A DNA stretch of 64,000 nt from Epithemia pelagica (GCA_946965045.2 OX337240.1:806001-870000), one strand, 5' to 3'; counted from the first letter of the stretch, positions 8,433-22,480 are shown. Numbers and translations: made by a program. The notes: generated by a model not told the origin, from the sequence alone.

Positions 8433-11400
8433 ATGTCAGAAGCAAGACCTGACCAAGTGGACTCAGGTGGTCGAGGACGAGGACAACAAGGACGAGGTAG
8501 AGGAAATCAAGGCCATGGTCGTGGCGGACGCAACCGAGGAGGTACAACTAGTAAATTTGAAGGACAAGAGCCCTTGCTCAAAGGGTGCATTTTCGATTAC
8601 GCTGAAGACTCCCAAGCGAAGAGATACTTAAAAAACATAGAACTATTAATCGGTTACATCGGAACCAAGTTCTTGAAATACAACCAAGATTTTCAAGTCG
8701 CTGTGGAGAACCTCAACCTACAAGACCCAGTTGCACCAACGGAGCCAGGACCTACTGCAACCAACATCCAAGTCAAAGCGTGGAAGATGGAGTACAAGCG
8801 AATGATGGATAAGAGAGATGCAGTGGCAGATTTTCGATCTGCTCTATATAGTATTATATTGGGACAGTCAACAGAACTCCTCAAGGATAAACTTCGAGTT
8901 CACAAAGACTTTGGATCAATTCAAACCAAGAGAGACGGGATTGAGTTATTGCAACTCATAAAAACAACTACCTTCACCTACCAGCCTGGGAGAGTTTACA
9001 CTGGAATGGCAATGGATCGAATCCGGTTTGACTTTTATCACTTGAAACGGCATCCCGGTCAGAGTGTCCACCAGTTCTATGAAGTGTTTAAGGCGAAGGT
9101 GAAAGTGATAGAGGAACTTGGAATTATCCTCTATGATGCTGCCTATGTTGAAGAGATTGCTAAGAAAAATGGACGTTCTGGCAACGCCATCGATGAGGAT
9201 ACAATAGAAGCTCAAGAAAGAATGATCGCCAATCGCTTCATTCGAGCATGCCAGCAGAAGGAGTATGAAGCTCATCTTCATAACAACTTCCTAGATGGAC
9301 AGAATATTTATCCAGCTACCTTGGTCGATGCTAGAGCAATCATGGATGCAAGAATGTCAAGAAAACAAGAACAACAGAGTCAACATGATACAACAAATGC
9401 AAATGGAGGTACTGGTGTTGCATTCATCACCGATTCAACAACAACAACTACAAATCAAGGCGACACCCAAGGTGGTGTCAATCAACAAGGTTCGAATCAT
9501 ACTGACCATATATCAACTGTTGTTCCAATCTCACCTGTTCTTTCTCTTTCAACTTCCCAGACTAACATACCCAAGACCTGGATCCTACTCGACAACCAGG
9601 CAACAGTCCATGTCTTTTCAAATCCACAACTTCTACGAAATCAACCATCCAAGGCCCCACATCAGATAACAATACGGGGACATGGGGGATCCAGGACAAC
9701 AGCACTTCAAGGCAAATTTGACCCTTATGGAACGGTCTGGTTTGACCAAGGGGGCTGGGTCAACATCCTCTCATTCTATATCATTACCAAAACCCACAAG
9801 ATCAAGTATAACGATGACAACGATACATTCACAGTATATGACAAAAATGGAGACCAGGTGGACTGCTTCAAATCAAATGGAAAGGGTTTGTATTATACTG
9901 AGCGTAATTCAGATAATAAATCATGCCTAGTCACCACAGTGTCTAAGAATAAGCAAGGATATACGGAGAATGAAGTTGCTCGTGCTAAGGGAGTCCGGTC
10001 GCTTCAAGCAAAAGTAGGGCGACCAAGTGACCGTGAACTGTGTAAGATTCTGGACTCAAATTTACTTCCGAATTGCCCATTCACGAGTCATGATGTCAAG
10101 TTAGCAATGAAAATCTTTGGACCCGACATAGGGATCCTAAAAGGAAAAACAACGCGAAGACGCCCACACAAAGTGGAATTCCAAGAACTCGTTGACGTCC
10201 CCATCCCAGACAAACACAAAGATGTTGTTCTCAGCATGGATGTCATGCATGTTAATGGCGTGGGTTTCCTTGTCACCATCTCTCGGAATATCAAGTTCGG
10301 GACAGTCCATACCCTACCGTCAGTTACAGATCAGTCTGTCATTACGGCAATCAAACAGGTAGCGTCAATATATCGACGAGGAGATCTGAGACCACGTGTT
10401 CTCTTAGCTGATGGAGCCTTTGATACGACAGAGATCAATGCAGCACTCAACAACATTGGGATCAAGCTCAACCCAACTTCAAGAGAAGAACATGTTGGTG
10501 AGGTGGAGCGATACATACGAACGCTCAAGGAACGAATGCGTTGTGTTTATAACACACTCCCATTTCGCTATGTCCCAAGAATTATGGTGATTGAACTGGC
10601 AAAGTATGCTTGTTATTGGCTGAACGCTTTTCCAGCATCCCAAGGACTTTCCAACACACTCAGTCCTAGAACTCTCGTAACTGGGGAAATGATTGACTTT
10701 AATCGTCACTGCAAATTTGAATTTGGTCAGTACGTCCAAACTCACGAGCAGCATTCAAACAACATGGGACCAAGAACAGTGGGAGCAATTGCCCTTCGCC
10801 CTACAGGGAACCGCCAGGGAGGATACTACTTCATGAGCCTGGTCACTGGCTGAATCATCAACAGGAATCATGCAACAATTGTGCCAATGCCTGAAGGCAT
10901 CGAAAAACGCGTGTATGATTTAACCAATGCGCAAGATCGGTACCCTAATTTGGCATTTGGCAACCGTGACAACCGAATTGTAGCCCTCGAATTTGATGAT
11001 GATGATGAATCAAACGATGAGGAATTTATTGTTGACGAAGAAGAGCAAGATATTGATCTTAGGTATGATGAAGAGTATATTGACGGCGAGCTAGAAGAAG
11101 TGGATGAAGAGGTAGACGAGGAAGATGAAAACCATGGATTGGGTATGGAGTTCATCGGTGAGGAAGAGGAATGAATAGGAGATCCAATGGAGGAAATGGA
11201 GGAAATCAAGGAGTGGGGGATCAAGGAGTGGAGGATGTGGAAAACGATGATCAAGTATTCAACCAACCATCAGTGGAAGGAGAACCTTTAGATGGTCCGA
11301 TCAATGCTCCAGCTGAAAATCCAGAAGTGGAGCAGTATCACGAAGGAGAACTCAATGAAAATCCTATATTGGCAAATGAGATTGACCAACAGGACGAACA

Positions 11401-13261
11401 AAATATAGAATATTTTGTTGATCAAGCCGTGGCAGACAACATGTTAGCAGAGAACCAAGCTGAGCCGGCCCTGGAACCAGAACCCAGAACAGAACCCACT
11501 GCAGCACCAAGTGGCGACAGAGACCCATCTGAACGACGATACAATCTACGTACAAATAGAGAACGTAGCTACGCGCATAGATATGACCATGATATCTATG
11601 TGACGAGCGCTACCAACGAAACTCCACAGATGGGTATGAAACAAGGAGTGAGGATGTTTGGAGATCTGGGAGTCTCGGCAGTAAAGAAAGAAGTTCTACA
11701 ACTTCATGACCGAGACGTGATTCGGGCAATTCACAGGAGCCAACTTACGAAAGAACAAATACGCCAAGCCTTAGGATATTTGATGTTCCTAAAGAGAAAA
11801 AGGAATGGGAAGATCAAAGGTCGTGGTTGTGCAGACGGTAGAAAGCAGCGGGGTCATATTGCAAAGGAAGACACAGTCTCACCAACAGTATCAACCGAGG
11901 CGGTATTTATCACGGCAATAGTTGACGCGATGGAGAAGCGAGAGGTGGCAGTAGTTGACATCCCAGGTGCATTTATGCAAGTAATCATGGACAAGGACGT
12001 CTATATGCGCATAACGGGACTGATGGTCGACCTCTTGATCGAAATTGACAAAAGCTACGAACAATTTGTGGTTTATGAACGTGGAGAAAAAGTTATATAT
12101 GTGGAATTACTACGAGCTCTATACGGTACACTCAGAGCAGCAAGACTATTTTGGGAGAAGCTCACAAGTGTTGTGAAAAGCTGGGGCTTCGAGATTAATC
12201 CATACGATTCTTGTGTGGCAAACAAAACAATCAACGGCCATCAGTGTACTCTTACCTGGCATGTGGACGATCTTAAGATCTCTAACAAAGATCCTGCCGT
12301 GGTAACGCAAATCATTGAGGATTTGAAGAACACTTTTGCCACCCTTGGTGAACTGTCCATTTCACGTGGCAAGCGTCATGATTATCTGGGAATGTGGTTG
12401 GACTTTAGTGAGCCCGGTACCCTTATGGTCGATATGCAATTATACATCCAAGGATTGATTGAGGAAGCGCTAAAGGAATTTCATGGCAAAGCCTTGACAC
12501 CAGCAGCTAATCATCTCTTCATGGTGACAGAAGAGTCCCCAAAACTGAAACAAGACCAAGCCGACTATTTCCATAGTCTCACTATGCAGCTCATGTATTT
12601 GGCCCAACGGGCACGACCTGATTTGAGAGCAACTCTGGCTTTCTTGAGTACTCAAGTTTCTGAGCCGACTGAGGAGGACTGGAGGAAACTCTCCCAACTG
12701 ATGAAATACCTGCAATCGACAAAAGACCTCCTGTTACGCCTCAACTGTGATGGGAGTGGCATTGTCAAATGGTGGATTGATGCGTCATACGCAATTCATC
12801 CAAACATGCGTGGACATACTGGAGCAGTCATGTCAATGGGACAAGGGGCCGCTCTGAGCATGTCAAGCAAGCAAAAATTAGTTGCCAGAAGTTCGACTGA
12901 AAGCGAACTAATTGGGGTCCACGATGGACTTCCATTGATCATGTGGAGTAAGCAATTTATGGAGGCCCAAGGCTATCCAATAAAGGACGTGATCTTGTAT
13001 CAAGATAACAAGAGTACCATCTTGCTCGAGAAAAATGGACGTGCGTCAAGCAGCAAACGAACAAAACATATCAACATCAGATATTTTTATATCAAGGATC
13101 GTGTTGACAAGAAAGACTTACGAATTGAATATTGTCCGACTGAAGAAATGATCGCTGACTTCCACACGAAGCCGTTGCAAGGATCCATCTTCTATACTTT
13201 TCGTGATGCCCTAATGAATATCCCGAGAACTAGTAAATACCGGGGAGATACAAAAATGTGA
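8433..13261 (+). pseudogene. Copia gag-pol polyprotein, disrupted by a stop at 10851-10853 and a frameshift near 11170-11210
   Basis: Protease WILLDNQATVHVF; integrase SMDVMHVN..ADGAF..EHVGEVERYIRTLKER; RT KGRGCADGRKQR, VVDIPGAFMQ, RALYG, WHVDDLK; RNase H WIDASYA, SSTESELIG, YQDNKS, ADFHTKPLQG. Confidence 0.92.
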
Positions 13262-13310
13262 GTTGTGAGTTGTGAGTTGTGAGCTACGAGAGTTGTGAGT
13301 TGTGAGTTGG
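13259..13310 (+). repeat. (TGAGTTG)n heptamer minisatellite in the copia 3' UTR
   Basis: About 6 copies directly after the pol stop codon. Confidence 0.8.
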
Positions 13311-13560
13311 AAGCTATACATGCTATCCATGATAGGTATGCTAGGTGTCCCAACAGCCCCTAGTACGGTCATAAGCTAGATTTGTAGGAGTAAATGAGAG
13401 TTTACCCTCCGATTGCGGGGGTACCTCCCGTCTGCTGTCTACACGCTAATATCCAAATTTTTAAAAAAATATCATTTGAATTTTTTACAGTAACTTTTTT
13501 ATTTTTCTAGATTCAATAATTGGATATAACGGTCAAACAGACCTCCCCGAACCACAGTTA

Positions 13561-13749
13561 ACCTGTGGGCCATTTATACCCTATCCCTAATGACCCTACG
13601 ACAAATCCTTTTGATGCTCCCACCTGTGGGCCATTTATACCCTATCCCTAATGACCCTATGACAAAACCTTTTGATGCTCCCACCTGTGGGCCATTTATA
13701 CCCTATCCCTAATGACCCTATGACAAAACCTTTGGATACTCCCACCTGT
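13561..13749. repeat. 61-bp tandem repeat x3 (subterminal)
   Basis: CCTGTGGGCCATTTATACCCTATCCCTAATGACCCTA(C/T)GACAAA..CCTTT.GAT.CTCCCA repeated head-to-tail. Confidence 0.9.
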
Positions 13750-14350
13750 TGACCATCCATACGCTACTCCTCCACGGGATGATGTGACAGTGGCATGATG
13801 TCCGGTCATTCAGAACTTGGTCATCACAATCCAGCACACAGACTGGAAGGACCATATCTCCACATCTTCTGGTGGGATTTGAGTCAACCTTTTTTCCTTG
13901 GAACCGTCTTTGAGTCTACTTTCTGATACAATACTGCCCATCAGATTTGAAAAAGAAAGGCTGGCGCGAAAAGGAGGGCATGCGTTCCAAAGGCGGCGCG
14001 AATGGAAAAAGAATTTTGTTTTTGTCTATTTTATTTTTCCTGGACGACGGACAAACAAAGGTACCCCCCCCCAATCGCTCCCAAAAATGAGAGAACTGTT
14101 ATATCACCCAGCTTGCCTCCCACTAAGATTCCAATTGCAAAAATTAGAATTTCTACACGATGCAACAATGGAGGTATAAGAACACTTCTTTTCACATGTA
14201 TGTCCTAGCTAGCCTCCAACTAAGTTGCCAATTGGAAAAATTGGAATATACTACACGAAACAACAACGGGAGTACAAGATCATTTCATTTCACATGCATG
14301 TCCTAATAGTATGTAGTAAGTGTTATTGCTATGTAAGAAGTTTCTTTCCC

Positions 14351-17300
14351 TCATTTTGGACTGACATCATGTTGCAGCTCACGAACAACTTTCACCACTT
14401 CTGCTTCAACCCATCGCTTTTCCATGAATGACCTCATATGCTCTCTGCTCAATTTTCGCAAACATGTTGCTTCACAATGATATTGGGAAATCGTGTTATA
14501 ATTAAAGTTCTTTTTTTCTTTCCAATTATGACGTATGGTATTCTGTCCATATTCAATTCTTTTGCCACATCCCTGACAAGTTGGCCTTGGACCACGGCTT
14601 TGTATGTTCTCTCGTAATGAAAAGCCATGTGGAATGCGTTGCTTTGATGCACTTTTGGGTTTTTTCCTACTTACGTTGTCACTTTCTTCACTGCTCTCTG
14701 CTTTCCTTTTCCTTTTGTCGTCCTTGCCTTTCATTTTGTGTTTCCTTTGTTGTGACAAAATTTCGCTTGAGAGTTTTGTCAATGATTCTCCTATATCTCG
14801 CGGTACGCGATCAGATCTCTCAACATCAAACAATTCCTCCCAATCAACAAAATCCTGTACTTTACTGCTTGCATTATTGTCTGTTACTTCATATGTTCCC
14901 ACAACGAGAGTTTTAGGTGATCCTTCCATAATCAATTGGGTTTCATCGCATGAATACAATTTGAATTTGTGTGGATTACTGAGACCATCATACTGCATCC
15001 ACCCATCTTCACACTTAATCAAAGTTATGAAGTGTTCTCGTTGCTCATCCAGAAGGATACAACCACGTAGTATGAGCTCTTTGTCATCTATTTCAAACTG
15101 TGGTGTGAGGACCGAAAGATCTTGATATTTTCTTGTCGCGGTAGTTAAATCCAGGGCCACTGTATGTGGCCAAGTCACAGTGTGTGCTCTATCTACCCAA
15201 CCAATACTTCCACATTTGCATCTTCCACTTCTCAAATGACTTCTCAAATGGTCTCCAACCATCACCCTTTCCACTACCTCCCAGCTTGCCTCATGTTCTG
15301 GCTGAATATTGAATTCATTTTTGTGTGTCGTCGATATTTTTCCATGCTGATTATAACGACAACGTTCGCGGCGACAACAATGAAATTTGTGCTCTGCATA
15401 CATTGTTAGGCTCATCTGCATTGGGTGAACAGTTGTGACACCTTGTACTTCTTCCTGAAAAAGTGGATTTGGAGTGTTTGGGAAATGACAATAGTATCTA
15501 TTGACATTGCCAAGGCAATTCACAAAATCTTGGCGACTGTCGAAAGCTTGTTGCATTTCAAATGTATTGAACAAGTCCATCCACAAAACTTTGGCCTCCT
15601 CACTTCTATTTTGATCCAACAATGAAAATGTATTCGACAAAAAACTGGAATGATTTGACAATTCTGGATAAGGAGTCAATAATTGCCCCGCATGGTAGGG
15701 AGCATAAATCAACACTAGCCAGCAATCCAGAGCGCACGTATTGATTACACTGTTGTGCTTCATTCCCCAGCATGGACCATTGAAGATGTGACGTTGTTTG
15801 TTGTCATGCACCTCCTTGTTTTCTTTCGTTTGGTTAGTTTGCACATTGCAACTCGTTTTGTTTTCCATTTTATCTTTGTCCAAAATATTACACTGGATTT
15901 CTGGTTGTTTGCCATCTGACAAATCCTTTATATTGACATGAGTTTCCTTGTCTTCTTTCGATTCTTTTTCCAAATTGAGTGACTTGTTGGTGTCAGGTGC
16001 TCTTCCATCATTTTTGGACATCTTTTTTGTTCGCTTGGTTGAAGAACGTGGGTATTGCGCATATTGTAAAGGCATTCCTCTTGCAGAGTTTCTTCTGTCG
16101 CACTCGAACCTGTTAACAAACTTCCATGCATTAAGTACTGCTTCATTGACGCTCATTTTCCGGTTTCTTACTAGAAATAGATCCTGAAACTGCTTTCCAA
16201 CATTTTCTTGTGCATTTGTTGACGACGATAGTTTGGAAAATCTGTCAGCCTGTGATGATGTAAAATTTTGGCAGGCAGGGAAGAATGTTTGTGCTCTGTC
16301 CGGATGTAAATACCAACGAAGCCACGGCATAGCTTTTGGGAAATGTTGCATCATTTTCTGACACGCATTCCAATAGTGATGGAACTTTGATTTGACGTTG
16401 GTAAAGGTATGGATTAGTTTGCGAAAATCACCCTTTTTTGAAGGTGGGACCACAGCACCATTTCGCTCAATGCGAGTTACAGACCGTTCAAAGTGGACGT
16501 TGCATTTTCGCAGAAATGCTAACAAATCTTTTTTGTCGATTGCTTTGTCACCAAGTGTTATTGTGGCATGGTCGTAGAGTTCATCCATAAAAGACATCCC
16601 AAGAGCATCTGACCAATCTACAGTGACTCCTGGGAAAATTGCTGCAAAGGATTGCCAAGACGTGTTAATTGAATCTCCATAGCTATGAAAAAGGCTTCTC
16701 CAATGTGATCCATAATGCTTTTTGCTCCTTCCAAAAATTAATGAGATTAGAACTGGCACCCATCTTTCAAGGATGAAATCATATGCCGAAGTAAAATGAA
16801 CGTCAATTGTTCCTGTGAATTCAGGATCATCAATGACTCCTTCAACAGTATCAGATTGCATTCCGCTATTTGCTTCATGTAGGATTTCTCTCATGTAATT
16901 GCTTTGCAACGTTATAATCGCTTCATCTAGCTTCACAAGCTCGGCTTTTACTATAAAAGTTTTTTCCGGTAAATCCTTTGTAAATTGGAGCAAGGAACCA
17001 ATGCTGCCATAAATCCCCTGTGCTTTGATGGGTGTACGTCCAAGTGTCTTATGCCGAAGGTACTTAACACGGTTAATTGTGCTAAATGCATCATCTAAGG
17101 CAACAACAGAATCATTTGTCAATGACCCCATTCGGAGTTTCTGGGGACCAAGGGAAGGGTTGGCAGTAACAATTTCATTAAACTGTTCGACTGCGTGGGG
17201 AGATGGTTTTGTTACTGGTGGGTTGGGATGATTGTGTGACCCTTTATGCTCAATCAACCACTGCTTCTTGTCTTTGATGAACTCACAAACAATCATGCAT

Positions 17301-18184
17301 GGGACATCTTCTTTATTCTGTGATCGTGAGTTTCCCTGTTGGATTCCACCAGTACATGCAATCCATTTCAGAGGTAGCTCAGGATGAATCGGACAAACAT
17401 ACTTTGCAGGACGTGGCGGGGCACCGAGTTTTTTGGATTTTGGTTGCATTGGTCTTTGCAGAAAATTACATTTTGGATCTTGACATGCCATCACACCAAG
17501 ACAATACAAATACCGTTTTGAATTCCCATTTGAATGTGTCTTGGTATAAAGATGACATAATGCGTATCCAAAGTATGGCTTACCATCATTGGACAAAAGG
17601 CCGGTGTCTAAGAGATACTTAGTATTCCCGTTTGGCCAATACACATCTGACAAGGCCTTGGAAGCTGTATCATCTTTGACATTCTGCTGATGATGTTTAA
17701 TAAAATGTTTTGTCGCATCCATATTGGATGTCTCTGGACAGGCACCTTCTGTAGCTATTCCTTCTTGTGGTGCTAAAACTGGAGTAGAGTCATTGGCATT
17801 CATGGGTGTGCAACTCTCTGGAAATAAATTGCCCCGTACTGGTGGAGACGCCGTTAGGGATGTTCCATTACCTACTCGAACAGGATGAGTTTGCTGAGAG
17901 ATGACACCACTATTTGGGTGATTGGGAAGCATATGCGAAAGAGACATCAATTCACGTCGTTGTCGCAAATTTCTATCCATCTCTATAAGTGATAATGACT
18001 GGACAACACCTTGGAACATTGTCCTGGAAAGGATGGATGACTGTTCTCCAGATGATGCAAGATTCTGCATGAGAAGTGTCATGAGAGGGTCGACACCAGT
18101 AGAACTAGCAGTGTTGGCAGAGTCATTCTGCTGGTCTGTTTTGTCGTCATCCGAGTCTTGAGCATTACTCCTAGAAGAAGACAT
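14351..18184 (-). CDS. 1277-aa transposase-like protein: GCM domain + MULE-type DDE core + putative USP/papain-like protease + PARP-type zinc finger
   Basis: GCM: WPNG..GYAL..YCLGVMAC..C..RP..CP..L.WIACTG..KGSHNHPNP. MULE core: QSDTVEG, VTVDWSDAL, KCNVHF, STNAQE. Protease-like: NTCALDCW ... EHFITLIK..GWMQYDGL. C-terminus: TCQGCGKRIEYG..IR...QYHCEATC. Confidence 0.8.
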   Translation of the reverse strand: MSSSRSNAQDSDDDKTDQQNDSANTASSTGVDPLMTLLMQNLASSGEQSSILSRTMFQGVVQSLSLIEMDRNLRQRRELMSLSHMLPNHPNSGVISQQTHPVRVGNGTSLTASPPVRGNLFPESCTPMNANDSTPVLAPQEGIATEGACPETSNMDATKHFIKHHQQNVKDDTASKALSDVYWPNGNTKYLLDTGLLSNDGKPYFGYALCHLYTKTHSNGNSKRYLYCLGVMACQDPKCNFLQRPMQPKSKKLGAPPRPAKYVCPIHPELPLKWIACTGGIQQGNSRSQNKEDVPCMIVCEFIKDKKQWLIEHKGSHNHPNPPVTKPSPHAVEQFNEIVTANPSLGPQKLRMGSLTNDSVVALDDAFSTINRVKYLRHKTLGRTPIKAQGIYGSIGSLLQFTKDLPEKTFIVKAELVKLDEAIITLQSNYMREILHEANSGMQSDTVEGVIDDPEFTGTIDVHFTSAYDFILERWVPVLISLIFGRSKKHYGSHWRSLFHSYGDSINTSWQSFAAIFPGVTVDWSDALGMSFMDELYDHATITLGDKAIDKKDLLAFLRKCNVHFERSVTRIERNGAVVPPSKKGDFRKLIHTFTNVKSKFHHYWNACQKMMQHFPKAMPWLRWYLHPDRAQTFFPACQNFTSSQADRFSKLSSSTNAQENVGKQFQDLFLVRNRKMSVNEAVLNAWKFVNRFECDRRNSARGMPLQYAQYPRSSTKRTKKMSKNDGRAPDTNKSLNLEKESKEDKETHVNIKDLSDGKQPEIQCNILDKDKMENKTSCNVQTNQTKENKEVHDNKQRHIFNGPCWGMKHNSVINTCALDCWLVLIYAPYHAGQLLTPYPELSNHSSFLSNTFSLLDQNRSEEAKVLWMDLFNTFEMQQAFDSRQDFVNCLGNVNRYYCHFPNTPNPLFQEEVQGVTTVHPMQMSLTMYAEHKFHCCRRERCRYNQHGKISTTHKNEFNIQPEHEASWEVVERVMVGDHLRSHLRSGRCKCGSIGWVDRAHTVTWPHTVALDLTTATRKYQDLSVLTPQFEIDDKELILRGCILLDEQREHFITLIKCEDGWMQYDGLSNPHKFKLYSCDETQLIMEGSPKTLVVGTYEVTDNNASSKVQDFVDWEELFDVERSDRVPRDIGESLTKLSSEILSQQRKHKMKGKDDKRKRKAESSEESDNVSRKKPKSASKQRIPHGFSLRENIQSRGPRPTCQGCGKRIEYGQNTIRHNWKEKKNFNYNTISQYHCEATCLRKLSREHMRSFMEKRWVEAEVVKVVRELQHDVSPK

Positions 18185-19207
18185 GATTAATGCAGAAAAC
18201 TAACCAACTGAGTTCCCTGCTGTAGTTATCTCTCCCTTACCAGTCGGGTAGAGATGTCACGACTAATGACGAAACGCGTGATCCACAGCAGTAGAATGCC
18301 AAAACACCAATGGAATGTAATCAGTACCGGGAGCAGTTGTCACTGGGCTTGCCTGGCAAAGCTAATTAGGTGTGACACGCTTCCACTGCAGTCTTTAGGC
18401 TAGGTAGCTACTCGGAAGTAACCAAGAACTAGCAAGTTCTGACGGTAACTGTTCTTGTCTCCACACACCGGGATTGCCAGTCCCTAGCCCAATCTCCAGA
18501 CATAGACAGTTGAGGAATTGTAAGGAGCAAGATGAACTCTGGCTACTCTGGCTGCACTGAAATCGTTCCAATTTGATGAATTCCACGCTTGTCCAATTTT
18601 GCAAAAGTGTAGATTCTCAAGACGGACCAACCTGCCACAGCACAAAGATAGAGAGCCTTGTCGCTTGGCAGGCGACAGCAACAGATGCTTTGTTAGGAAA
18701 CAAGCGGTGTGCCGGAGCACGCGAAGTAGTACCTGTTGAGTACCTTAACTTCGCCCCCCTAACGATATCCAGCCGGTCTGGCAAGGATCGCCCTCTTTTC
18801 AGCCTGTTGGCCTACTTGTACAATCACGTGCGGGGTGGGGGATTACACAGTCTCGCGGGGACTGGGAATTGGGTTGGCCGTGGGATTGGTTACCTCGGAT
18901 ATGTCCCCCAATTCAGTGGAAAAACTCACAATGCCAGGTATCTAGTTACGGGACGGGGCAAGCACAAAGAGGCCCAATGCAATATCAGGTGGGTCTAGTG
19001 ACGCTTCTTGCAAGATAAATTCAAAAATGAGCACGCAGCACACAAAAACCAATCGCACAAAAAACACAACAGATTTCTATTCTGTTATCTCACAGATTGT
19101 GAGAAGTAGAGGAAAAAATGGTCGGGATTAGTGCCTCAGGGGTATCTTCTAGTCATTGAACTTGGTGTATGCTGTATGCTGGATAGTTAGAGTAGTAGTA
19201 CGTAGCT

Positions 19208-19550
19208 GGCCCAATACAACATCAGATAACGAGCTCACATCTTTTTCTTCTTTTGTGCTCCAGGGAGTTCCTTACCTAGGCCCAATAAAAATCAGATGAC
19301 GAGCTCACATCTTTTTCTTCTTTTGTGTTCCGGTGAATTCTTTTATTTGGCCCAATACATTATCAGATGACGAGCTCACATCTTTTTCTTCTTTTGTGTT
19401 CCGGTGAATTCTTTTTTTGACCCAATACAATATCAGATGACGAGCTCACAACTTTTTCTTCTTTTGTGTTCCAGTGAGTTCTTTAGCTCACAACATTGGA
19501 CAAAATGAAATTTTTCTTATGTGTTCCAGTGAGTTCTTTAGCTCACAAAA
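19208..19550. repeat. c.70-bp tandem repeat x4 plus a shorter duplicated tail (subterminal)
   Basis: G(G/A)CCCAATA starts at 19208, 19279, 19349 and 19419, each followed by ATCAGAT(G/A)ACGAGCTCACA.CTTTTTCTTCTTTTGTG. GTGTTCCAGTGAGTTCTTTAGCTCACAA occurs twice after that. Confidence 0.9.
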
Positions 19551-19731
19551 TTGGCCAAAAAATCAGACGGTCGACAACTTGAACTCACAAAATTTGCCAT
19601 TTAGTACCAGTGAGACATCTGAATAATGTCCGAAGAATCAAAATTAGATTCAACTATCGTCTATTGTGAGTATTGAGACATAATGTGGACAAAAAAAAGA
19701 AACTACCCTTAGAAACTCCCCTCTAGGCTGT

Positions 19732-19772
19732 GGACAATTTTGTGAGCTCACAACGAACTCACAAAATTATCC
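19732..19772. other. 15-bp stem hairpin 6 nt from the transposon right end
   Basis: GGACAATTTTGTGAG (19732-19746) / CTCACAAAATTATCC (19758-19772), one mismatch, 11-nt loop. Confidence 0.75.
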
Positions 19773-19805
19773 TCCCTCGTAAATACCATTCCTCGCGAAG
19801 GAGTG

Positions 19806-20019
19806 TGTTAAGACAAGTGGATGCAAGTAAGGCAAAGGAAACGAAAAGTGCGACTGAAGAGGAAAAGGCCCAATGGACTTTGGTGACACGTCAGAGTCAT
19901 AGGCACAAGATCGAGGCGAAACAAACAAATGAGCCAAGAAGAGGCTCATTCTTTTTAAAATAACACGAGATCATCTCTTGTGGTTACTTGTACGGTACGA
20001 CCGGAGTTGTGTTTCAACA
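19806..20019 (+). repeat. 3' LTR of copia element 1 (214 bp)
   Basis: Starts TGTTAAGAC right after a purine tract (CGAAGGAGTG) and ends GTTTCAACA, an imperfect inverted match. No partner LTR is visible in the window. Confidence 0.6.
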
Positions 20020-20029
20020 TCGATTGCAC

Positions 20030-22480
20030 GTCGTCAGCAACCACGGCAGATGCCGAGGATCTGGTCATTCTATTATTGAGTCAGCCCGTGCCAACATCCC
20101 TTCAAGTTTCAAGAAGCGTCCATCATTATGTCTTGTGCCTTTTCTTTTTACTTTGTTTCTTATGTGGCTCCATCATATTAGCCACATGAAAAGTGATTTG
20201 CAAGGTTCAATCTCGTTGCTCGGAGCATACTCATGTACAACATTCGATCAACTAGATTGAGCCCTGCGAATCACTTCTCAACTGTGAGCGCTCCGTGCTT
20301 TCCAAGAAAATGGATCAAGTGCTCGAAAAGTTCGACGCTCAGGAGAAAATGACTGAAGAGCTCCGGGAAAGCTCAGGAGACGAAGAATGACAAATCTAGT
20401 GCGAGAATCATGGAAAGAAATGAATTTTACGGAGCCGAGATTACAAATCTCAAGCAAGAAAATCAGGTTCTCAAGCAAGACCATCACGATCGCCAGGGAA
20501 AGGATGAATTTTACGAAGCGGAGATTACAAAGCTCAAGCAAGACAATCAGGATCTCAAGCAAAGCATTACGAAGCTCGAGGAACAGGATAAGAGACTCGA
20601 GGAAGAGCTCAATGGGATTAGATCTGCTTTTTGCAACAACCCAGGCCATGGCCCCGAAGCTTGCATTCTTGACCTTCATTCCTTTTGAGATCATAAGAGA
20701 CGTGAGTCCACATGAAAAGTGATTCGCAAGGCTCAATCTCGTTGCTCGGAGCATACTCATGTACAACATTCGATCAACTAGATTGAGCCCTGCGAATCAC
20801 TTCTCAACTGTGAGCGCTCCGTGCTTTCCAAGAAAATGGATCAAGTGCTCGAAAAGTTCGACGCTCAGGAGAAAATGACTGAAGAGCTCCGGGAAAGCTC
20901 AGGAGACGAAGAATGACAAATCTAGTGCGAGAATCATGGAAAGAAATGATTTTTACGGAGCCGAGATTACAAATCTCAAGCAAGAAAATCAGGTTCTCAA
21001 GCAAGACCATCACGATCGCCAGGGAAAGGATGAATTTTACGAAGCGGAGATTACAAAGCTCAAGCAAGACAATCAGGATCTCAAGCAAAGCATTACGAAG
21101 CTCGAGGAACAGGATAAGAGACTCGAGGAAGAGCTCAATGGGATTAGATCTGCTTTTTGCAACAACCCAGGCCATGGCCCCGAAGCTTGCATTCTTGACC
21201 TTCATTCCTTTTGAGATCATAAGAGACGTGAGTCCTTAGGAGTCACGTCTCGTTTGATCTCAAAGGGCATGAAGGTCAAGAATGGCCAAGAAGCGGTTCA
21301 ATATCCTTGGTCGCCAGTTGGGAAGAAGGTCCTACCTAGATGAACTCCTCTTGGCAAATGATCCTCGCCAAACATTGAAAATAAGTTGGGAACGGGATCT
21401 TTTTGGTGGCAAGAACAACAGTGAACATTATTAACTGCACTATTTTGTCGGGACTGAGCTTTTTTGTCAATACAGTCGAGCACGCTGCTGAGTTGGCCAC
21501 TAGATCGAAACAGATTGGTGCATGATGGCGCCTTCCCTGATGCTCTTCTTGGGTTTGACAGCAATAATGAGATCGACGGCCTGCAGAACGTTGCTGGTGT
21601 AATTCAGGCTTGGGTGCCCCCCCCCAAAATCCCTGTCCAGCTGGTCCCCAAAGGAGGCGACTACCTTTAACAACGAGCAAACGCGAAGAAGAATCGTTCA
21701 GCCGTTTCTTGAATCCTTGGTAAACTAGGTAGCTGAAGGCGAAATTACCGAAAGGAAACATTGCCATCAGTTGTTTGAAGACAACGAAGCAGTCTATTCT
21801 TACAGAACTCTGCAATAAACAGGGCTACTTTGCTCTGAACCCCGCAACTTGGTGTCTAGTATACACGGAGTAATTGGATGAATTCGATTCCACGTTCCCA
21901 TCCCCTAAACGTTCCCATGCTGAGATTACAAGGATTTGGATGGATTACTAGATTAGCATGCACAACGTATGACATAATCTTTGGACTCCCGTAGGGGCGG
22001 ACTTTGATGGGGTGTATGTATTCAAATCACAGCGTACAGTGCTCGTGCATTTGTCCCACTGAAGGAAGCACTTTGCCTAGGATGTGATATGAGTGCTTTC
22101 TATCAATGTAGCTCAGGACAAGGCTAAGCTCTTGCCAGTCATCGCGTTTTTCAAGCAAAGTGGATTCTTCCAAGGAGGCAAAGCGCCCTTTTCCAAGACG
22201 GCACAATCACCAACATGGCAGCCACATTGTCATTCTTTGTCCCCATCTCCTTGTGGACGCTTCACCTCCATCTATCGCTCCATGTGGGATGAGAAGGACA
22301 TGCTGTGGCAGCGGTGGTGTGAGATGGATTCATTCTTGTGGTGGGTGGGTGGGATGCACATTCCAACGATTTGCCAAGAATCCAAAACCCGTGGAATGGA
22401 CAGGGTGTGGTTCGTTTCATTGGTCTGAACGTACCTCAATGGTGTCCCACTCTGTCGGTTCGAGGATCCACTGCCGTTTC
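20030..22480 (+). pseudogene. Decayed gene-like block with a coiled-coil exon, paralogous to 5600-7330
   Basis: Colinear homology to 5600-7330; coiled-coil ORF EITNLKQENQVLKQ..ITKLEEQDKRLEEELNGI; in-frame stops downstream. Confidence 0.55.
20182..21233. repeat. Near-perfect 526-bp tandem duplication
   Basis: CCACATGAAAAGTGATT starts at 20182 and 20708. ORFs at 20410 and 20936 differ by one residue. Confidence 0.95.

Follow-up and report, generated by a model that had tools for sequence, protein, structure and literature searches.

What kind of gene occupies positions 14351-18184 of a 64,000-nucleotide stretch of the genome of the diatom Epithemia pelagica (GCA_946965045.2 OX337240.1:806001-870000), and what might a protein of its composition do? 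An initial annotation of this stretch, which we call the window and from whose first letter all nucleotide positions are counted, had read the locus as an intact transposase of four modules: a GCM-type zinc domain, a DDE transposase of the Mutator-like element (MULE) type, a ubiquitin-specific protease (USP)-like domain and a PARP-type zinc finger. We find that the open reading frame (ORF) is the transposase gene of a recently mobile DNA transposon, and that its product carries, in this order, a GCM domain, a DDE transposase core, a USP-fold peptidase and a PARP-like finger. We are highly confident of the identity of the element and of this four-module architecture.

The ORF and its relatives

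The ORF proved uninterrupted, as annotated, and lies on the minus strand, which the annotation had left unstated; all protein features below are on that strand. It starts with ATG, encodes 1277 residues with no internal stops and ends in a stop codon (14351..18184), and it is present in one copy within the 64-kb window. The motifs quoted in the annotation were found where they had been placed: WPNG at residue 183, CLGV at 228, DWSDA at 523, CNVHF at 561, TNAQE at 656, NTCALDC at 815, HF at 1051, YDG at 1065, CQGCG at 1203 and YHC at 1235. Residues 1-177 form a low-complexity region (17654..18184) without matches in Pfam or among PDB sequences.

Taken alone, the window protein has no Pfam match even at E ≤ 10, and its one match among PDB sequences is a weak, eL34-like one at the C-terminus (E 0.1). 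Because these single-sequence searches were blank, the annotated motifs could be checked only through relatives. Two of three word-indexed homologue searches were also nearly blank, the matches being P0001 (99% identical; its 90% cluster has 22 members), a protein of 27% identity and one of Mycena capillaripes. The family came into view through an exhaustive phmmer search with residues 151-1277 as the query: 1062 cluster representatives have E ≤ 1e-3, of which 113 reach E ≤ 1e-30. Each module was then compared with known domains by family profiles and by AlphaFold models of residues 170-740 and of residues 795-1277 (14354-15802). The relatives come mostly from metagenome or transcriptome contigs. 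Those with named hosts are from the diatom Attheya sp. and the Agaricomycetes Mycena capillaripes and Ephemerocybe angulata, the Basidiomycota matches being significant (Mycena, E 6e-9; Ephemerocybe, E 2.6e-10) and the Ephemerocybe relative bearing the UniRef name "GCM domain-containing protein".

The architecture recurs across this family. The GCM domain is present in all 76 relatives with a sufficient N-terminus, and a USP-type domain in all 53 that have at least 330 residues past the DDE domain; 35 of these 53 end in the finger, and all four modules occur together in 25 proteins. Since the whole architecture is kept in distant relatives, the peptidase and the finger appear to be working parts of the transposase rather than captured genes. 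"Cargo", the word that the initial annotation had used for the USP-like domain, is therefore wrong.

The GCM domain and the DDE transposase core

Three modules, GCM, MULE-type DDE and USP-like, are each borne out by profile matches, by fold and by residues conserved across more than 50 relatives. The GCM-type zinc DNA-binding domain spans residues 178-325 (17210..17653). A profile built from 23 full-length relatives matches mouse GCM1 (1odh_A) at E 2e-12, as does a profile of the N-terminal half built from 60 sequences (E 6e-13), and the model of residues 170-740 (predicted local distance difference test (pLDDT) score, 90.4) matches 1odh in Foldseek at 3.4e-5, with a template modelling (TM) score of 0.57 by target. 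The ligands C228, C234, C239, C264, H267, C277, H317 and H319 are kept in 41-49 of 44-50 sequences and align to 1odh in the two-zinc, eight-ligand order of GCM proteins, H267 taking the place of a GCM1 cysteine. The gathering score of PF03615 is not reached by the window protein, which has no match to it, or by two relatives that match at 7e-5 and 6e-3, under the 25-bit cut-off. The domain thus resembles that of animal GCM factors (GCM1/GCMa, 1odh) in both zinc sites and in all eight ligand positions, with one Cys-to-His replacement, whereas in the animal transcription factors it is not joined to a transposase, a peptidase or a finger. Babu et al. (2006) viewed the GCM family as restricted to animals. 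The domain, long thought to be animal-only, now extends to diatom transposases, and its presence there supports a transposon origin of the GCM transcription factors.

The second module, a Mutator/IS256-type DDE transposase at residues 336-735 (15980..17179), is identified by fold and residue conservation. Its predicted catalytic residues are D445 (16850-16852), D523 (16616-16618) and E660 (16205-16207), the last lying in TNAQE, and all three are conserved among homologues (55/58, 60/60 and 56/56 sequences, respectively). C561 and H564, each kept in 60/60, form a CxxH between D523 and E660, as the Mutator C/DxxH motif requires. In the model, D445 lies in a strand and D523 after one, with E660 in a helix beyond an all-helical insert, a geometry that fits an RNase-H-fold DDE enzyme with a helical insertion. 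The best Foldseek match is ISCth4 of the IS256/Mutator family (6xgx and 6xg8; 1.2e-5 to 1e-4), ahead of Hermes and Transib, with TNAQE aligned to ISCth4 TTNTIE, and the nearest ESM Atlas models of the transposase carry PF10551.

Two other affiliations were considered. A Kyakuja-Dileera-Zisupton (KDZ) identity, prompted by the Mycena match, was dropped, there being no KDZ Pfam match and the best fold being IS256/Mutator; a link to Drosophila Foldback-NOF, which would draw on language-model features (0.90) and a TM score of 0.45 only, is not established. Directly past the transposase domain lies the sequence NDGRAPDT (residues 725-732; 15989-16012), which is near-invariant in the family at N725, D726 and P730.

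A PARP-like finger at the C-terminus

The weakest of the four calls is the C-terminal finger (residues 1183-1275; 14360..14638), with ligands C1203, C1206, H1236 and C1241. The profile matches and conserved ligands make it quite probable that the finger is of PARP type. With a profile of 34 fingers, the eight best PDB matches are all PARP1 Zn1 or Zn2, at E 3e-6 for a two-finger chain and 0.008-0.16 for single fingers, and the ligands are kept in 21-25 of 21-26 sequences. The finger is modelled with pLDDT above 90 as three strands followed by helices, within a half-model whose fold search is dominated by the USP domain. It shares with the fingers of PARP1 and DNA ligase III (PF00645) a C-x2-C pair followed after about 29 residues by His and Cys, the strands-then-helices order, a Gly ahead of the first Cys, an Arg past the second and a later Trp. 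It differs from them in having H-x4-C instead of H-x2-C and in being single, C-terminal and part of a transposase.

A rival reading, which we consider unlikely but worth keeping in view, is that this is an ordinary zinc module for transposon-end DNA or a protein partner, alike to PARP in ligand pattern only. Every PARP match of the family is indeed sub-threshold: PF00645 is matched by 12 of the 34 members, at best with 4e-4, and all of these lie under the 39.3-bit cut-off. The spacing C-x2-C-x29-H-x4-C, seen in the window protein and most relatives, departs in its last interval from the canonical C-x2-C-x28-30-H-x2-C; three relatives align as H-x2-C, with an upstream His that still allows x4 there. 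The eL34 match of the single sequence and the mixed language-model neighbours of the finger (zf-PARP in 18/100, with scores ≤0.79) point the same way, and the C-termini of other relatives differ: the Mycena protein ends in a C1/PHD-like finger, and P0069, a 1715-residue transposase from a Logan contig, unites a USP-like domain (833-1091) with one of the Ulp1/C48 type (1354-1529; PF02902, E 5e-17). PARP1 fingers nevertheless take the top eight places among profile matches, ahead of other zinc fingers, and the alignment extends beyond the ligands to the Gly, Arg and Trp noted above. We favour a PARP-type finger.

A USP-fold peptidase with a conserved triad

Between the transposase core and the finger lies a USP-fold cysteine peptidase (residues 800-1095; 14900..15787), recognised by profile, fold, catalytic triad and zinc ribbon. 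The triad residues that the initial annotation had picked out are conserved in homologues: C817 (15734-15736) in 39/39, H1051 (15032-15034) in 37/38 and D1066 (14987-14989) in 34/37, the other three having Asn (Asp or Asn in 37/37). The four cysteines of the finger-subdomain zinc ribbon (C936, C942, C989 and C991) are kept in 36-38 of 37-38 sequences. The family profile matches USP46/USP12 at E 3e-9 to 1e-6, and the window protein falls under the gathering score of Pfam UCH (PF00443) while the relative P0068 exceeds it (28.2 against 23.9 bits). The model of residues 795-1277 has a pLDDT of 78, with most of the USP core above 90. Foldseek matches it to the USP fold at about 1e-7; at E ≤ 1e-3 there are at least 269 matches, and the best 50 of these are all USP-family or Pan2 pseudo-USP chains. 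By VIA Z, the leading structures are USPL1 (15.1, with 225/251 residues aligned), USP35 (14.5), CYLD (14.0) and USP12 (13.8). Values of 12-15 are reached against more than 30 USP entries, spanning model residues 4-308, and each of the 47 chains at Z ≥ 8 is USP or PLpro-like. Judged by its conserved triad, the peptidase is very probably catalytically active.

Which substrate it would act on is a separate matter. An alternative to a deubiquitinase is an isopeptidase for small ubiquitin-like modifier (SUMO) or another ubiquitin-like protein, equivalent to the Ulp1 (C48) enzymes of Mutator, Ginger and CACTA-type transposons. The top structural match, USPL1, is a USP-fold SUMO protease (Z 15.1), and Ulp1 is the usual MULE peptidase (PMC2836005). 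However, USPL1 leads the true deubiquitinases USP35, CYLD and USP12 by a small Z margin, the best profile matches are to USP46/USP12, and the presence of USP-like and Ulp1 domains together in P0069 speaks for different, not redundant, jobs for the two. On balance we regard a SUMO-type specificity as rather unlikely.

Less probable still, and in our view a long way from the best account, is that the peptidase acts in cis and cuts the 1277-residue product into pieces, as the USP-fold PLpro of coronaviruses does with polyproteins. Low-complexity linkers flank the USP domain (residues 733-800 and 1100-1182), viral PLpro chains occur among the fold matches with Z 8-11, and Babu et al. made such a suggestion for OTU-bearing MULE transposases (PMC1702500). 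Yet neither linker shows a Gly-Gly or LxGG-like site that is conserved in the family consensus, and cellular USPs outscore PLpro. A catalytically dead scaffold, as the Pan2 pseudo-USP chains among the best Foldseek matches might suggest, is highly improbable given that Cys, His and Asp/Asn are retained in essentially all relatives, a pressure to which a dead domain would not be subject.

The ESM Atlas model nearest to the USP-like domain belongs to a vertebrate cluster named "Chromosome 14 open reading frame 28" (331 residues, no Pfam family), with a TM score of 0.62 by that row over 256 aligned residues. From this resemblance between models, a minimal USP fold of a like kind may be present in that uncharacterised protein of vertebrates.

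Element ends, insertion site and second copy

The ORF is the one long gene of a 6537-bp transposon on the minus strand (13242..19778), the boundaries of which were set by comparison with a second copy, L001. The element is flanked on both sides by an identical 9-mer, GTAAATACC (13233..13241 and 19779..19787), and its two ends are inverted repeats of each other, imperfect and about 45 bp long; classical MULEs typically have 100-200 bp. The 3' end in gene orientation (13242..13316) contains an array of TGTGAGT heptamers, for which TRF reports a 7-bp unit in 7.3 copies at 13257-13309, and its terminus, GGGGAGATAC..TGTGAGTT, pairs imperfectly with the opposite, 5' end (19735..19778), which reads GAGGGAGGATAATTTTGTGAGTT..GTTGTGAGCT from the terminus. 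TTGTGAG-type motifs are concentrated at both ends of the element in inverted orientation. A subterminal tandem array at the 5' end (19207..19484) consists of four 70-bp units, each containing GAGCTCACA.

L001 (ENA ERZ21939226 ctg1349l) belongs to an assembly of either this genome or a close one. It is 99.3% identical to the window copy over 5.7 kb (window 19778-14083 and 13404-13241), has unrelated flanks and is bounded by a 9-bp duplication of its own, GAAAGTGAG. In the N-terminal region L001 is out of frame, and its called product begins at residue 51. The two copies also differ at 13405..14082, where the window has an extra segment of 678 bp and L001 has 6 bp (TTGTCA) instead. This segment contains a 61-bp tandem array in 3.2 copies (13561-13756), its ends share an inverted CGATTG(G/C)GGGGG..TACC stretch, and no further copy of it occurs in the window; contigs from public runs show both forms at 13405-14082, with a loose end at 14083. 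It may be a miniature element nested here or a deletion in the other copy.

The element interrupts a Ty1/copia pol gene close to the 3' end of the latter (window 11171-13241 and 19788-19960). The gene's present ORF (11171-13261; 696 residues) runs on into the duplication and the element. When the element and one duplicate are removed in silico, the copia pol ORF grows from 696 to 748 residues. The element has thus been recently mobile: two near-identical copies have different flanks and each a perfect 9-bp duplication, and the empty site restores the copia ORF.

A more distant relative, L005 (38% identical), has a 9-bp duplication as well and a terminus of the same kind, GAGTGTGGTGAATTTTGTG; its ends read GAG..AATTTTGTG / ..CTCCCC, with three TTGTGTCCC repeats at each. 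The duplication is accordingly 9 bp in all three, the window copy, L001 and L005, and the Mutator norm is 8-11 bp, typically 9; the loci L003, L004, L006 and L007 end too near the gene to show element ends. That the ORF might instead be a domesticated host gene, as an intact frame with conserved modules and the mere "GCM domain-containing protein" names of some fungal relatives could suggest, is barely credible in view of the duplications, the inverted ends, the near-identical second copy elsewhere, the 22 sequences in the 90% cluster and the insertion inside a copia gene.

Place among known transposons

The element is an autonomous cut-and-paste transposon of the Mutator (MuDR/MULE) superfamily and most probably of its MuDRF branch, to judge by the published description of MuDRF and, as a stand-in for the Repbase consensus transposases, by the significant matches to proteins of Basidiomycota, a published host group of that branch. 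MuDRF is a distant MuDR branch in Repbase, found only after four rounds of PSI-BLAST (PMC3164196), in which one protein joins a GCM domain, "specific for MuDRF", to a DDE transposase and the duplications are 9 bp (PMC3164196); its hosts are Basidiomycota and Naegleria (Cantu et al. 2011, PMC3164196). Our element resembles MuDRF-1..3_PSt and the others described there in its N-terminal GCM domain, distant MuDR-type DDE core in the same protein and 9-bp duplications. The combination of GCM and DDE is thus not new, and of the architecture for which the initial annotation had named an existing Repbase entry as grounds for refutation, this half is already catalogued. The published description is of GCM and DDE only, however, whereas here a USP-fold peptidase follows the DDE core (in at least 53 relatives) and a PARP-like finger is terminal in 35. 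The USP-like and PARP-like parts go unmentioned in that description, the Repbase entries themselves having been outside our comparison. The host differs too, the present element being from a diatom. Within the published host group, our searches also reached proteins of Mycena and Ephemerocybe.

Full-text literature searches for a USP, C19 or deubiquitinase domain, or a PARP-type finger, together with a transposase found only Bao et al. (2010; PMC2836005), who mention in passing an IS5-like protein of Trichomonas vaginalis, XP_001314237.1, with transposase_11 and Peptidase C19 domains. This protein likewise has a C19/USP domain fused to a DDE transposase, but it is IS5/PIF-like rather than Mutator, is without a GCM domain, has no reported PARP finger and is a single protein, not a characterised family. 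We found no paper describing either the USP domain or the PARP-type finger in MuDRF-type transposases, whose GCM and DDE parts were already known.

Other transposons also pair a transposase with a papain-like peptidase of the ubiquitin/SUMO system, namely the MULEs with Ulp1 (C48), Ginger1 with Ulp1 or OTU and the Helitrons with OTU (PMC2836005, PMC1702500). In these the peptidase is of the C48 or OTU type; in our element it has the USP/C19 fold and stands alongside a PARP-like finger. Among diatom Mutator elements, the group surveyed by Dupeyron et al. (2019; group 37) is SWIM-type, and the words ubiquitin, protease, GCM and PARP are absent from that survey. The diatom SWIM-type MULEs share the superfamily, the hosts and the 9-bp duplications with our element, and a Phaeodactylum MULE also carries a ubiquitin-system gene, a UBR-type E3 ligase (bioRxiv 10.1101/2023.01.02.522487). 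They have PF10551 and SWIM, inverted ends of about 200 bp and a separate ORF for the E3 ligase, whereas the present transposon, with its short ends, encodes GCM but not SWIM and has a peptidase fused to its transposase, an enzyme of the opposite direction to a ligase.

A possible mechanism and what weighs against it

For transposition itself, the GCM domain would bind the TTGTGAG-type repeats at both ends of the element, and the DDE core would excise and insert it with a 9-bp stagger, a K/R-rich linker (about residues 1146-1182) taking the protein into the nucleus. The finger could then keep the protein at the nicks, gaps or hairpins that arise in transposition, and the peptidase could strip ubiquitin or a ubiquitin-like modifier, with SUMO a live alternative, from the transposase, chromatin or repair proteins on site. 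Removal of the modifier would stabilise the enzyme or steer the repair of donor and target sites; a role in post-transposition repair has been proposed for the Ulp1 and OTU peptidases of transposons (Bao, Kapitonov and Jurka 2010, PMC2836005). Taken as a whole, a MuDRF-branch element with a four-module transposase working in this manner is probably the best explanation of the locus.

Several observations weigh against this explanation. Besides the blank Pfam search with the window protein, the sub-threshold PF00645 scores and the unusual spacing of the finger, neither PF10551 (MULE) nor PF00872 is matched by the window protein (E ≤ 10) or by 22 full-length relatives (E ≤ 0.1), a miss that fits the published status of MuDRF as a distant branch. 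The finger was not detected in 18 of the 53 USP-bearing relatives, many of them fragments, and the Ephemerocybe locus has GCM and DDE with no detectable USP; hence not every member of the clade has the extra modules. The putative roles of the peptidase and the finger extrapolate from the conserved triad and zinc ligands. As to the element, the 678-bp extra segment near its 3' end might impair the window copy, and nonsynonymous and synonymous differences between the two copies stand at about 17:10 past codon 51, with no clear sign of purifying selection at that scale; such a ratio is what drift after insertion would give. The three public runs with element sequence resemble DNA assemblies (contigs ≤0.5 Mb) and are silent on transcription and introns.

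The functional parts of the explanation are accordingly graded lower than the architecture. The proposal that the targets of the peptidase are ubiquitin or SUMO conjugates of the host, at DNA lesions, is a tentative one, with the balance somewhat against it. Rather doubtful is the fuller version, a transposon-encoded, lesion-targeted deubiquitinase whose finger docks on the nick, gap or hairpin of the element's own making while the peptidase strips ubiquitin or SUMO from histones, PCNA, repair factors or the transposase. If this were true, the element would control repair of the donor gap and the 9-bp target gaps, or would escape ubiquitin-dependent silencing or degradation. The initial annotation had imagined something similar, an element that senses DNA breaks and edits host ubiquitin marks. 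Ulp1 and OTU are examples of ubiquitin/SUMO-system peptidases that turn up repeatedly in unrelated transposons. The present family would add a compact counterpart, a single protein whose DDE transposase is hard-wired to a USP-fold enzyme with an intact triad and to a putative nick-detecting finger of the PARP1/ligase III type. The young, apparently intact copies would suit the study of whether transposons manipulate ubiquitin or SUMO at breaks that they make themselves. As an intact Mutator-type element of diatom origin, the transposon might also be developed for insertional mutagenesis in diatoms.

Neighbouring sequences

Two observations concern the surroundings of these elements. At the L005 locus, on a Logan contig, a piggyBac-type transposase gene (PF13843; L005:5683-6852) is separated from the end of the related element by about 300 bp, which indicates that the relatives live in transposon-rich DNA. 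In the window, just past the copia remnant, there are two tandem, near-identical units of about 530 bp (20278-21240). On both strands these carry ORFs that overlap, such as 20410-20688 and 20936-21214, with a coiled-coil-like product of 92 residues.

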